Shown here: in pieces, positions 17,233-22,092 of the stretch
How the letters are laid out: each line of letters opens with the position of its first letter
Position numbering within the stretch: the stretch's first letter is position 1
Assembly: GCA_003693705.1 (NCBI GenBank)
Contig: RBZT01000499.1
Coordinates: 248,001 to 312,000 of the forward strand
Direction of reading: 5' to 3'
Source: Polymyxa betae A26-41
Lineage: Eukaryota > Protista > Endomyxa: Phytomyxea
Length of the DNA: 64,000 bases
The notes under the pieces: generated by a model
Database searches by the model: none
What the model saw: only the letters and a program-made list of their open reading frames with translations
Told to the model about the DNA's origin: nothing
Position numbers and translations under genes: made by a program

Positions 17233-18702
17233 TTAAAGGAATGAATGATATTCCGTACTGCCTTTCTGGCGAAAATGAACACGTTGCTTGATACGGTCTT
17301 CGACAGTATCGCCAGATTCCATAAATGCTTGTTTCTTCATTTTCTGAATGAATTCAGCGTTATTGCCGGCTTCCGAGTCGCGAAGTCGTAGCGCTTCTTC
17401 CTCGCGTTTTTGTGCTTCAATATCGAGCTTTAACTGTTTCGAGCGAATTTCGTGCTGTCCTTGGGCATCGTTCATCATCGCCTTTAGCCTGGCTTCACGC
17501 TCTTCTGGCGTCAAAGTGCTAGAAACTGATGACGCCACATCTCTCTTCCTTTGTAGCCGTTGCCCAATACGAGATTTGAGCGCCTTCAGCCTCAATTCGT
17601 GAGCCTCTTTCGGAGCCATGGCATCTCGTTCTGGGCTTCTAGATTGTGACCGCTTTGCTAGCGAAGCCGCACGAGGTTGACGATCCCTGCTTTGCGATTG
17701 TGAACCACGACGAGAGGACCTTTCGTCGTCATCATAACGATGTCTCCTGTCCCGAGATCTATCACGATCTGGAGAATCTCTGTTTTGTCGCGACGTCGAG
17801 CGCGATCTGCCCCTGCGGTTGTCTCTTGCAGACCATGAGCGACCTCGATCTCGATTATCACGAGAACGATCCCGACGACGATTGCGATCGTCGTCCTCTT
17901 GTCGAGGAGATCTGGACAGGTGCCGAGAGTGACGGCCGTCGTCTTTGGATCTTCGATAATCACTGCGATCATCAGGTGAATGATGTCGGCGTTCAACTGG
18001 ACGGGGCGCCCTCGGCTGAATCAGCCCATATTTATCAACATGGCTACGCACACGCTCGGGAGCCGGCGATCGGCTGCGACTTGCAGATTTCGAGCGTCGA
18101 CTCTCCTTATTGTGCTTCTTCTTCTCTTTTTTCTTTTCCCCTTTCTCCATCTTCTTCAGCTTCTTCAGCAGCTTTTTCTTGTCAACTTCTTCCCGAATGC
18201 GTTTCATCTGCAGCGGATTCTTTAGAATACTTAGACGCTGTTCCTGTTCTTGCTTTAAAATCAGCAGCATGGGATCCTCTCGAATCCTTGATTCTGCATC
18301 AAAATCTCTCTGCTCATACTTCTGCACCCATCTTTCAGTGCCATTCGTAGATATCGCATCGACGCCGGTTGGCTTCTTAGGCTCGGGCGCCAATTTACTA
18401 GCGGGAATGGGTTTCCCGAGAAGAAACTCCTCTTTCTCTTTCTGTTTAATTTCTGCCTCAATCTCGGCACTGCGATACATCCAATCGAGACGTTCGACCG
18501 GCTTTTGTCCGACACCATGCTGGCGTTGCAGGGCGCGAAGCTCCTCGACCTGGCGTTCTTCAGCAATCTCCTTCTGAAGCTGGGCTAGTTTCGACTTCTC
18601 GGCGGCATCCTTTTGCTCTGCAAGCCAGACTTTCTCGGCATTGGCGATCGTGGCTGTATGCCAGCTCTTTTTGTTCAAGAAGGAGAGACCGCCCTTCCCC
18701 AT
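17233..18702 (-). CDS. CWC25: Pre-mRNA splicing factor CWC25
   Basis: LSFLNKKSWHT..NAEKVWLAEQ (CIR N-terminal), ERLDWMY, EFLLGK, IREDPML; RS/RD-rich tail. Confidence 0.93.
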   Translation of the reverse strand: MGKGGLSFLNKKSWHTATIANAEKVWLAEQKDAAEKSKLAQLQKEIAEERQVEELRALQRQHGVGQKPVERLDWMYRSAEIEAEIKQKEKEEFLLGKPIPASKLAPEPKKPTGVDAISTNGTERWVQKYEQRDFDAESRIREDPMLLILKQEQEQRLSILKNPLQMKRIREEVDKKKLLKKLKKMEKGEKKKEKKKHNKESRRSKSASRSRSPAPERVRSHVDKYGLIQPRAPRPVERRHHSPDDRSDYRRSKDDGRHSRHLSRSPRQEDDDRNRRRDRSRDNRDRGRSWSARDNRRGRSRSTSRQNRDSPDRDRSRDRRHRYDDDERSSRRGSQSQSRDRQPRAASLAKRSQSRSPERDAMAPKEAHELRLKALKSRIGQRLQRKRDVASSVSSTLTPEEREARLKAMMNDAQGQHEIRSKQLKLDIEAQKREEEALRLRDSEAGNNAEFIQKMKKQAFMESGDTVEDRIKQRVHFRQKGSTEYHSFL

Positions 18703-18978: not shown

Positions 18979-19877
18979 AGATGATATTACGATACAGAGG
19001 ATTCTCACACAAGACGCTTCATTAACTGTTTTCTCTAGCTACCAATTATCAAATATTTTCAAAAAAGTTGGACAGGTTACCAGACGAATGCTCTTCTTGA
19101 TTTTTGGTTCCGTGCCAAACCAACAAATTCACGATATAGGTACTGTAGGTATGAGACTCTGGCACAAATAAACACTTTTTTCGTCGCTCCTGGTCGACCA
19201 CTTTTTGACATTTCTCTTATGTATTTGCCGACTTCACCCATTTCTTCTCGATAGCCGCTCTACACTGATTCGTTGCCTGATTATCGCTTCCGTGTTTGGT
19301 TGCCAATATGAACCTGACACATTCAGCCGATTATTGCCAAATCGTCTATTTTGGGTCCGATATCGGTTTAGGCGAAGTAAAAGCAAGCACTCGCCAGACA
19401 AAACCCGCCTGTCGACCAGAAGATGAACGCTGCATTAAGTTCGCATTTACAGCGACGAAGATTAGTTTCATCATACGGCATGACATTCGGCTTCAAGGCG
19501 GCCTCGACAACTACAAACGGAAATTGAGCGAGGCTCAGCAAACCAAGTAGCAGGTGAATGAAGCGTTCGCATGGTTGGCGGTCACTGAAAGCTTGAATTG
19601 ACACTGGGTCGTTTAACAAAACTACAGCATGACTAAATTCAAATGCTGTCGATAAAAATGATTGAAATCTCGTTTCAGAGTAGAGACTGAATACGACCAG
19701 GGACGAAGAAACGCTCACAGATTAACTTCCATTGACGAGATTAGTGCATAAACTACGATCAGTCTGTTTCTTAGGATTCTGAGAATTGAAAGAATAATTT
19801 ATCGATATAAGATCATAAATATTAGGTTAGATCAATGGTTACTGGATGTGAAAGAATTCCAGTGCTGACATTCGGGA

Positions 19878-20927
19878 TTAAATAATACAGAATTCAAGAT
19901 CGTCTGTGTCTGTGAATGATCTTGTCAATACGTCTCTTAGCTCCATCAAATAAAGCACTTGGTCGCTTTGTCTGACTGAAGGGTATTTCACATCCAAACA
20001 GAATTCGGATTCTTTCTCTCGCAGCATATCGGAAACATCAGAAACGATCAGCGACAAAGATTGCTCCTCGGAAAACGAGATGGATTTGAAATGCACAGCA
20101 ATAGAAGTATAGAGGCGCAACCAGAATTGCAATGGATCATGAATGTCCGAACTCGTCGTGGGCAGCCAGCTAAAGAAGACCATCTCCAAAACATCAGGTT
20201 GCAGGAACCCAACACCGAGGGACTTTACAAAGCGCAGATGACAGGCGTTGATATCGTCTTCGCCGAAACCAGCTTGTAGACGATTGAAGACGTTGTTCAT
20301 GATCACGTAAGCGGCCTCATGCCAGACCTCGACGTAATTATGAGGGTTCAACAAGCGACCAAGTTTTGAGTCCAGCAAGTTGATGAAGATGGAGACGCAT
20401 TGCTCAGGAGATGTCTTGGCAAAGAAGTAGACAGTGAGGGAAGCCAGACGATCCCATCCCTGACTATATTCAAGATCAGAGGATTGGAGATGCTTGAAGT
20501 CGATGTCGGAACCATGATGGGCGAGAACTCGAACAACATTGACGAGGACGTCGCTGACAGCACTACGAAACTCGTTAAGCTCGTCCCGATCTTTGACCAA
20601 CACGTTCGGATGCTGAATACGATTGACATCAAGCTTGATTTGCTCATAAGCTTTGTTGACAGTGTTCAAGCTGCTCTGATCCAAGAGACTGTCATCTGCA
20701 GGTGTATGGAGACTCCCAACGCCGAGACGATCGTTGATAGGATGCCTGGAAAGGAGGCGGTCGGTCCCTGGGGAAGACGAATGCTCTAGGAAATGGTCGT
20801 CGATGATCGCTGGTTCCTCGAAAAGCCGAGTCTGCTCTGTGTCCTCGATATAGTTCTCGATGAGGTTGATGCCAAAGACGACGGCAACATGGACCAGGAG
20901 GCAGATAGTGAATGATAGTCTTGACAT
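19878..20927 (-). CDS. Secreted protein with TBC (Rab-GAP) domain, TBC1D20/Gyp8-like
   Basis: Signal-peptide-like MSRLSFTICLLVHVAVVFG; QIKLDVNR (IxxDxxR) and LEYSQGW (YxQG); later FVKSLGVG and FFSWLPT. Intronless, 349 aa. Confidence 0.75.
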   Translation of the reverse strand: MSRLSFTICLLVHVAVVFGINLIENYIEDTEQTRLFEEPAIIDDHFLEHSSSPGTDRLLSRHPINDRLGVGSLHTPADDSLLDQSSLNTVNKAYEQIKLDVNRIQHPNVLVKDRDELNEFRSAVSDVLVNVVRVLAHHGSDIDFKHLQSSDLEYSQGWDRLASLTVYFFAKTSPEQCVSIFINLLDSKLGRLLNPHNYVEVWHEAAYVIMNNVFNRLQAGFGEDDINACHLRFVKSLGVGFLQPDVLEMVFFSWLPTTSSDIHDPLQFWLRLYTSIAVHFKSISFSEEQSLSLIVSDVSDMLREKESEFCLDVKYPSVRQSDQVLYLMELRDVLTRSFTDTDDLEFCII

Positions 20928-21213
20928 GATGGTCTAATACAAATGAATTATGACCGAGGAAGATGGGAGTCAAACGATCTGAGGTCTCCGGGGTTTGCGG
21001 CTACCGTCGTTTTCTTACGGACTCCGGAAGACCGCGAATTCGACATCTTTCAGTTAGATGAAGGAAGTCGAATGCCGTATTCTTGCGACGCGGATTGGAA
21101 TAAAGATAAGATTCTTTCCATGAACATTCGAAGGCGGCAGCTGTCAATGCTGCAAATTCGCAAGCCGATGACTGTTTTTAGTTGCATTTCATTTAAACAG
21201 AGAGGTTCCCATG

Positions 21214-21400
21214 AAGGCTCATCACCCCAAGTGGCTGCTGCGCCTTCTTATTAATCATTAGTCGCTCATTAGAGAGAGCCACGTAGCCCACACCAGTCCA
21301 TCTAAAGGCCCCATCACCCCAAGTAACTGCTGCGCCTTCTCATTAGTCGCTCATGAGAGAGAGCCACGTCACCACTTTAGCCCACACCTTGCCCATCTAA
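21214..21400. repeat. Imperfect tandem duplication, 2 x about 93 bp
   Basis: CATCACCCCAAGT..CTGCTGCGCCTTCT..CATTAGTCGCTCAT..GAGAGAGCCACGT..TAGCCCACACC..CCATCTAA occurs twice head-to-tail. Confidence 0.85.
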
Positions 21401-21540
21401 CAATGTAAATCTTTAGATTGCATACCGAGAACTGCAGATAGAGACTGATATCTAAGAGCGTTGAGTACCATTTCAAGCAGGCTGCTAGTGATCGGCGCGT
21501 GTGCTTCGTCAGATCGTATTCCGATCTGGCTGTGGCGGCA

Positions 21541-22092
21541 ATGGCAGCACGCCGCTCTCTGAAGATCATGGTGACGTCGCCGGAGCTGGAAGATACCGTT
21601 TTGGTGGCTGCAGAAGGTGGCAATAGCCGCTTGTCGACCAAGGAATCGTTTGGCAAGATCTCACTCGGCCCTGCTTCTGAAGAGGGGTCCTCTATCAAGC
21701 CCACGCCGCCTTCGGCTAAACCGTCAAAGAAGCCAGCTGAAACTAACGATGATACTGCAATTACTCGGTTCCCACAAAAACGCAGCGAAAAGTTTACAGT
21801 ATCGGGAGAGACGGCTAGCAATAGCGAGTCATCGGACGCTGAAGAGCAGATTGGCCTCTGGAAACGCGACGATAATGTCAGCGAGATGGTGGCGGTTCAG
21901 AAACAACTCGGCCTAAAGTCTAGCAGATTCAGGCCGCTTTTCCTCGCCTCCGAGGATGAACATTCGGAAACAGATATGTCAGATATCTCGATCGACGGCG
22001 ACGAAATTATCCCAGCGGAAATGCTACAGACCTGGGAAAACGGCAGTACGTTTTCACAATCAGAAGATGAAGATGATACCGACGAGTCCTAA
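21541..22092 (+). CDS. Acidic, Ser-rich low-complexity hypothetical protein
   Basis: Uninterrupted ORF from MAARRSLKI with S/E/D-rich, disordered-looking composition; no recognised domain. Confidence 0.55.
   Translation: MAARRSLKIMVTSPELEDTVLVAAEGGNSRLSTKESFGKISLGPASEEGSSIKPTPPSAKPSKKPAETNDDTAITRFPQKRSEKFTVSGETASNSESSDAEEQIGLWKRDDNVSEMVAVQKQLGLKSSRFRPLFLASEDEHSETDMSDISIDGDEIIPAEMLQTWENGSTFSQSEDEDDTDES

Follow-up and report, generated by a model that had tools for sequence, protein, structure and literature searches.

Does a parasite that lives inside plant cells encode a TBC Rab GTPase-activating protein (Rab-GAP) built to leave its own cytosol? The question is raised by an open reading frame (ORF) of 349 amino acids (aa) at positions 19878-20927, on the minus strand, of a 64,000-nucleotide (nt) stretch of Polymyxa betae A26-41 contig RBZT01000499.1 (assembly GCA_003693705.1, positions 248,001 to 312,000), to which, at its full length, we refer as the window. 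Polymyxa betae is an obligate intracellular parasite of sugar beet roots and the vector of the rhizomania virus. An original prediction, made from the DNA sequence alone, had described the ORF as a candidate secreted Rab-GAP effector, in which a signal peptide is fused to a TBC domain bearing both catalytic fingers. We find that its product is a lineage-specific, probably exoplasmic TBC-like protein and a plausible candidate for an effector acting as a GAP on host Rabs.

A divergent TBC-like domain

The product of the ORF, which begins MSRLSFTICLLVHVAVVFG, carries each of the originally quoted motifs at the residue given for it: QIKLDVNR at 96-103, with R103, and LEYSQGW at 152-158, with Q156. 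The further quoted segments start at residues 125 (SDVLVNVV), 180 (IFINLLDSKLGRLLNP), 233 (FVKSLGVG) and 251 (FFSWLPT), and the plus-strand reading of the same interval is riddled with stop codons. A dual-finger pattern of the form [ILVM]xxDxxR, 25-65 residues and YxQG arose in 90 of 200,000 composition-preserving shuffles (4.5e-4), and of the 118 open frames in the window that reach 100 aa, this ORF alone has it.

An exhaustive HMMER search of 1.84 billion representatives returned a sole relative, P0001 (E = 6.6e-6), which is PBRA_000609 (CEO97263.1) of Plasmodiophora brassicae, a single-exon gene in three assemblies. The two proteins are reciprocal best matches and 28-30% identical, and the blocks best conserved between them are Q[IM][KR]LDVxR, YSQGWDR and F[IV]NLLDSxLGRL; the retention of both catalytic residues at this level of identity argues that catalysis is under selection. 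A word-index homologue search found nothing with the single protein and only P0001 again with the family profile, a scan of metagenome contigs yielded no relative, and a check for paralogues in the P. betae genome found none. Microsynteny was likewise absent, the 17-kb P. brassicae locus and the window having just this gene in common. On these searches, the family is lineage-specific and restricted to plasmodiophorids. Neither PBRA_000609 nor its accessions are mentioned in the literature that we searched or in the supplementary material of PMC12503489, and one NCBI record (the OVEO01000008.1 locus) labels the gene product a ‘DUF2330 domain-containing protein’, for which Pfam shows no match.

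The relation of this two-member family to TBC domains was addressed by alignment and by structure. In an unguided MAFFT alignment, R67, I97, D100, R103, Y154, Q156 and R271 occupy TBC columns with an invariance of 90% or more, in both family members. Aligned by hhalign with 29 TBC proteins, the family pairs EQIKLDVNR with EQIEKDLQRTF and LEYSQGWDRLA with IGYSQSMNFVA, with a score of 31.2 (P = 0.0013) as against 15.0 +/- 2.5 (maximum 24.0) for column shuffles, none of the 200 of which reached the real score; the extended alignment stays colinear from TBC position 133 to position 365. The P. betae sequence is present in the ESM Atlas, with a model built without a multiple sequence alignment (MSA) (predicted template modelling score (pTM) 0.57, predicted local distance difference test (pLDDT) 0.54). 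Its five nearest structural neighbours are all TBC clusters (template modelling (TM) score by query 0.56-0.66, 256-299 residues aligned), while all non-TBC rows stay at or below 0.31. By atlas features, all ten of the best ten matches that bear a family are TBC (top score 0.90), and TBC clusters were matched again when the homologue's domain was used alone.

An AlphaFold2 (AF2) model computed from a joint MSA has a pLDDT of 77-93 for residues ~80-230. When the trimmed model was compared with 48,161 PDB chains (VIA), the best nine were all TBC domains (Z 7.0-11.1; first non-TBC 6.7), headed by TBC1D20-Rab1b (Z 11.1, root-mean-square deviation 2.6 over 96 residues) and including TBC1D15 (Z 10.4, 176 residues), a result that is circular for the fold, TBC sequences being in the MSA, and counts as consistency only.

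Several results speak against a TBC assignment. The RabGAP-TBC profile PF00566, with which the original prediction had proposed to check the domain, does not reach its gathering score and gives no match even at E <= 10, nor does any other Pfam family at that limit, and the homologue is likewise without a Pfam family. No PDB match was obtained by phmmer or by the family profile. The hhalign probability is merely 5-19%, AF2 run on the single sequence has a pLDDT of only 38, and in the MSA-based model the C-terminal third (residues ~234-349) is without confidence. Foldseek gave no significant match to the MSA-informed model (best TBC1D15, E = 0.28, probability 0.75), and the atlas model of the P. 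brassicae homologue matches no TBC structure (TM <= 0.32). Weighing these against the atlas model, the hhalign alignment, the MAFFT columns and the low chance rate of the dual-finger pattern, we consider it very likely that the protein holds a true TBC domain with both fingers, as first proposed, albeit a very divergent one, which standard domain annotation (Pfam, HMMER) misses entirely.

The stretch preceding the domain had been described as an acidic, disordered linker of ~70 aa. Its acidity was confirmed (15 acidic and 5 basic residues between 21 and 95), but it is a linker only in part, as the region around R67 is conserved in P. brassicae, where TDR...I.[ND]RL.V is kept, and R67 itself lies on the motif-A arginine column of TBC domains (R in 28 of 30 sequences, by MAFFT). 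The P. betae protein resembles TBC Rab-GAPs (PF00566; Gyp1, TBC1D20, TBC1D15) in its predicted all-helical domain, in the colinearity of both finger motifs, in keeping the motif-A and ‘LFR’ arginines and in having TBC structures as its best matches. It differs from them in falling below every sequence-family threshold, in having lost the Trp of motif A, the ‘RTF’ that follows the arginine finger and the block ‘LRVWD’, in a 9-residue insertion before the glutamine finger and in its acidic, degenerate N-terminal part. The confinement of the family to plasmodiophorids sets it apart as well, as does a signal sequence, by which the domain would end up across the membrane from where a housekeeping GAP works.

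A closer kinship, with the endoplasmic reticulum (ER)-anchored Rab1 GAPs TBC1D20/Gyp8, had also been read from the downstream segments, and this part of the original prediction did not hold. A separate, multi-exon TBC1D20 orthologue lies on contig C942 (L020, G000:C942:11383-14664, minus strand ~1435-2393); it carries VSKDIARS, HYIQGYHD and FALSWVLTWFSH, and one of its exons matches human TBC1D20 (4hl4) at 2.1e-15. The TBC-like gene is therefore not the TBC1D20 orthologue of the genome, whose housekeeping copy the original prediction had proposed to look for. A PF00566 scan of the genome assembly (27,085,814 bases in 1,001 contigs) gave 34 matches at ~18 other loci, the TBC-like locus not being among them, and on these comparisons it is an extra gene beside the ~18 canonical ones. 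When all TBC loci of the genome were compared with the family by hidden Markov model (hmmsearch) and by blastp, the best E was ~0.5-3, with no preference for L020, and in structure TBC1D20 (Z 11.1) merely ties with TBC1D15 (Z 10.4). What the protein does share with TBC1D20/Gyp8 is an aromatic residue directly after YxQG (YSQGW in this protein, YIQGY in the TBC1D20 orthologue of the same genome), TBC1D20-Rab1b as its top structural row and, in the P. brassicae homologue, C-terminal hydrophobic segments. The P. betae protein lacks the C-terminal tail anchor of TBC1D20/Gyp8, and it shows no detectable sequence affinity to the genome's TBC1D20.

Among the GTPase genes of the same genome, we also noted an intronless one (L037:1408-2118 (+), G000:C356), which encodes a Ras-family GTPase of 236 aa (PF00071, 2e-46); its switch II, DSCGQGRF, is unusual, and its C-terminus lacks a Cys prenylation motif. 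The only intronless Ras-family genes in the genome are a divergent Rab-like protein and a fragment, the canonical Rabs being multi-exon.

The N-terminal signal and the side of the membrane

Topology was assessed by sequence heuristics, namely charge (the positive-inside rule) and hydrophobicity. In the P. betae protein, the Kyte-Doolittle mean over 19 residues peaks at 2.26 at residues 5-23 and the next best window anywhere reaches 1.24; no window beyond the N-terminus exceeds this value, in agreement with the earlier remark that no C-terminal membrane anchor is seen. A signal-sequence architecture (n-, h- and c-regions, V at -3, G at -1) stands at the true N-terminus and is kept in PBRA_000609, whose 14-residue uncharged h-region (CLAAAFALVLVAVA), ending AVA and followed by RK, has the length of a signal peptide and is too short for a membrane span. 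The N-terminal hydrophobic segment of the P. betae protein is flanked by a charge of +1 on the N side (R3) and a net charge of -3 within the next 16 residues on the C side. Both proteins are hence predicted to be oriented N-in/C-out, with the TBC-like domain exoplasmic. One feature weighs against a cleaved signal peptide: the uncharged N-terminal run of the P. betae protein, L4-I23, comprises 20 residues, which makes an uncleaved anchor possible.

The two proteins differ at their C-termini. PBRA_000609 has two C-terminal hydrophobic segments (~346-364 and ~388-402), with a +8 loop between them and a +10 tail after them, and these segments, together with the N-terminal signal, suggest that it is membrane-anchored with its domain outside, so that the P. 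brassicae version would be displayed on a membrane instead of being released. Secretome pipelines that discard transmembrane proteins would probably lose this orthologue. The P. betae protein ends EFCII, without an ER-retention tail, has no N-glycosylation sequon and contains 4 Cys in its mature part. Its terminal CII was considered as a CaaX box and rejected, the Cys being third from the end and not fourth. As to the start of the P. brassicae protein, the annotated one lies 21 residues upstream of the second Met (M22), and a start at M22 would give a classical signal peptide.

Transcript, features and neighbours of the locus

RNA evidence for the gene consists of Logan contigs of two 2022 runs, X2 and X3, which cover it at depths of 150 and 188 (the depth of a neighbouring contig is 3.3). 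These contigs are colinear with the genome, with zero joints, from a poly(A) site at ~19777 through the ORF and the upstream stop to beyond 22000. The X2 contig end at 19777 has a loose end of 11 T on the plus strand, indicating the poly(A) tail of a minus-strand mRNA with a 3' untranslated region (UTR) of ~100 nt. Since an in-frame TAG precedes the ATG and unspliced RNA runs across it, an unspliced N-terminal extension is excluded and M1 is the earliest possible start. The gene is expressed, polyadenylated and unspliced, with no upstream exon in the assembled RNA. Both the intronless ORF and the ATG of the original prediction are thereby borne out, on the minus strand and with the hydrophobic segment at the true N-terminus. 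A reservation is that the RNA contigs merge with the transcripts of neighbouring genes, and the 5' end of the mRNA is thus not fixed. A contig of X1, from a relative ~95% identical, spans the last ~65 codons, with 6 listed differences in 5 codons and two residue changes (S299L and V318A). The raw reads of a poly(A) RNA run, X10, include none on this stretch, which counts as no test. The coordinates of the gene and of the parts of its product are collected in Table 1.

Table 1. Features of the TBC-like gene and its product in the window (GC content ~45%); residue numbers refer to the P. betae protein.
Feature	Position	Strand	Basis or detail
Complete intronless coding sequence	19878..20927	-	349 codons and TAA stop (19878-19880); ORF listing, X2 and X3 RNA contigs without joints
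In-frame TAG 3 codons 5' of the ATG	20934..20936	-	Sequence read; RNA contigs cross it unspliced
3' UTR of ~100 nt, poly(A) addition site near 19777	19777..19877	-	X2 contig end at 19777, X3 contig end at 19779
Residues 1-19, signal-peptide-like	20871..20927	-	n-region MSR, h-region LSFTICLLVHVAVVF, c-region with V at -3 and G at -1
Residues 20-84, acidic low-confidence region	20676..20870	-	Degenerate TBC N-terminal part including R67; pLDDT <50
Residues 85-349, predicted all-helical TBC-like core	19881..20675	-	hhalign colinear with TBC profile 133-365; AF2; atlas model; PDB structure search
Arginine-finger motif IxxDxxR, I97-K-L-D100-V-N-R103	20619..20639	-	MRLDVGR in P0001; I, D and R columns common to 27-29 of 30 sequences
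Glutamine-finger motif YxQ, L152-EYSQGWDR-160 (Y154, Q156)	20448..20474	-	YSQGWDR identical in P0001; Y and Q columns common to 29 of 30
N183-LLDSKLGRL-192, most conserved family block after the fingers	20352..20381	-	N183, L184, L185, D186, S187, L189, G190, R191 and L192 invariant between the two species
F268-WLRLY-273, R271 on the TBC ‘LFR’ arginine column	20109..20126	-	R in 29 of 30 sequences; F268 and R271 invariant in the family

Upstream, on the same strand and 1.3 kb away, lies an ORF of 206 aa (22240-22860, minus strand), which shares the 3125-nt X2 RNA contig with the TBC-like gene; its signal-peptide-like start, MSMPKSLIICAAITALISAVYC followed by QD, and the 9 Cys of its mature part, without a Pfam family, make it a second candidate secreted protein beside the TBC-like one. 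Divergent from the TBC-like gene is an acidic, Ser-rich ORF of 197 aa without a Pfam family (21499-22092, plus strand), which is covered by X2 and X3 RNA contigs and by an X1 contig (~95%-identical relative). Between the two divergent genes lies a two-copy direct repeat (21220-21369; period 85-92 bp, with blocks of 37 nt and 30 nt that are 89-97% identical), located ~300-440 bp upstream of the TBC-like ATG, which may be a shared promoter element. The downstream neighbour (17233-18702, minus strand) encodes a 489-aa pre-mRNA splicing factor (CWC25/Cir_N) whose long tail is rich in Arg, Ser and Asp.

A possible action on host Rab GTPases

How could a Rab-GAP on the exoplasmic side of a membrane meet a substrate? 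Within the host cell, phytomyxid plasmodia are enveloped by a plasma membrane of their own, which directly adjoins host cytoplasm and organelles (PMC10953367). The N-terminal segment would take the protein into the ER with its domain on the exoplasmic side, as the positive N flank, the acidic C flank and the short h-region of the homologue suggest. Because the plasma membrane of the parasite directly faces the host cytoplasm, ordinary secretion would then deliver the P. betae protein into that cytoplasm, and in P. brassicae the C-terminal hydrophobic segments would hold the domain on the parasite surface, facing it. Such exposure answers the objection that a lumenal GAP has no substrate. There, the TBC dual fingers would accelerate GTP hydrolysis on host Rab GTPases, and vesicle delivery, secretion-based defence or autophagy would be switched off locally at the parasite interface. 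Taken as a whole, a secreted or displayed dual-finger TBC acting as a GAP on host Rabs is the best explanation that we can offer, and we give it somewhat less than an even chance. The fuller scenario, in which a TBC gene gained a signal peptide and its catalytic domain leaves the parasite, as a soluble protein in P. betae and as a type-I membrane protein on the plasmodial surface in P. brassicae, inactivating host Rabs near the naked membrane, is more tentative, and we would sooner expect it to fail than to hold.

The proposed export of a TBC domain fits a pattern, in that cytosolic-type folds are found among the P. betae proteins predicted by SignalP to be secreted, for example a six-member G-domain cluster (PMC12503489). 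Counting against it, that structure-guided study of plasmodiophorid secretomes names neither the P. betae protein nor a TBC fold (PMC12503489).

Several other explanations compete with that of a GAP acting on host Rabs. The divergent TBC fold might enter the parasite's secretory pathway and, devoid of GAP activity, function within that pathway or at the parasite surface as a binding or scaffold module (for example in the lumen of the phagosome, ER or Golgi or on the exterior of the plasmodium) in which the fingers are structural. A GAP in the lumen would indeed have no Rab to act on, the prediction for the P. brassicae homologue is a membrane-anchored protein, the motif-A Trp, ‘RTF’ and ‘LRVWD’ are all lost, and the C-terminal third is not confidently TBC-like. 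Catalytically inactive TBC domains do exist, TBC1D23 being one, and it is found among the structural matches. However, the catalytic residues and their motif context (IxxDxxR, YxQG) are the very blocks that are best conserved at 28-30% identity, and the mature protein, having just 4 Cys and lacking an N-glycosylation sequon, does not look like a typical protein of the lumen or the cell exterior, nor does its end, EFCII, form an ER-retention tail; we regard such a scaffold as unlikely, yet as a contender to be taken seriously.

That the domain never leaves the parasite's cytosolic side appears to us rather unlikely. Were the N-terminal segment an uncleaved anchor, or the P. brassicae C-terminal segments a tail anchor, the protein would sit on the cytosolic face of a parasite organelle as a membrane-tethered Rab-GAP of the parasite's own, like TBC1D20 at the ER. 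TBC1D20, the top structural match (Z 11.1), is itself a membrane-anchored Rab1 GAP, PBRA_000609 ends in two hydrophobic segments and a polybasic tail, and the 20-residue uncharged run of the P. betae protein is borderline for a span. Yet the charge distribution, with R3 before the segment and a net -3 in the 16 residues after it, predicts N-in/C-out, with the domain outside the cytosol, the homologue's h-region, with only 14 uncharged residues and the ending AVA, is what cleaved signal peptides typically show, a C-terminal anchor is absent from the P. betae protein, and a canonical TBC1D20 is already present in the genome. We judge it improbable that there is no TBC domain at all and that an orphan helical secreted protein carries two short motifs that are finger-like by chance or convergence. 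The lack of a Pfam, HMMER or PDB sequence match, the low hhalign probability, the homologue's atlas model without a TBC match and the non-significant Foldseek result would all agree with such an orphan, and middling Z scores are common among helical proteins. Set against this are an hhalign score that none of the 200 column shuffles reached, seven nearly invariant TBC positions that are colinear in both species, an MSA-free atlas model with five TBC clusters as matches (TM 0.56-0.66) and all else at or below 0.31, and the low chance rate of the dual-finger pattern (4.5e-4).

A GAP that a eukaryotic parasite turns against host Rabs would have counterparts among other pathogens. Bacterial pathogens deliver the Rab1-GAP effectors VirA/EspG and Legionella LepB (PMC3674391), and in the host-Rab reading P. 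betae would follow their logic of sending a GAP against the Rabs of the host. VirA/EspG use TBC-like dual fingers, an Arg/Gln pair. The bacterial proteins reach the host through type III or type IV secretion, with folds either unrelated to that of TBC or only convergent with it. The P. betae gene differs from theirs in being eukaryotic and apparently a true TBC descendant, and its product would use the ordinary signal-peptide route; none of these bacterial proteins was among the 50 best-ranked structural rows. An effector of Phytophthora infestans co-opts a host TBC Rab-GAP, and there, too, Rab-GAP activity at the pathogen interface subverts defence-related secretion (PMC11451530); this effector recruits a plant-encoded Rab-GAP, whereas P. 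betae would provide a TBC domain of its own. Neither a TBC protein with a signal peptide nor the export of a Rab-GAP by a eukaryotic pathogen was described in the literature that we searched. What appears to be new here is, plausibly, a kind of TBC Rab-GAP with inverted topology that is restricted to plasmodiophorids.

Should secretion or GAP activity fail, what is left is a divergent, lineage-specific TBC paralogue of modest interest. If the host-Rab reading is true, it would make this protein the first Rab-GAP that one eukaryote is known to export into another. Very few plasmodiophorid effectors have, to our knowledge, been assigned an activity, and the candidate offers a concrete mechanism that can be assayed, a dual-finger Rab-GAP with R103 and Q156 as loss-of-function controls; with its orthologue in the clubroot pathogen, the question is directly testable. 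Export of such a GAP would give a wall-less intracellular plasmodium a mechanism to avoid host vesicle fusion or autophagy, and it bears on how the naked plasmodia of plasmodiophorids can survive in plant cytoplasm, neither enclosed nor degraded by host membranes.

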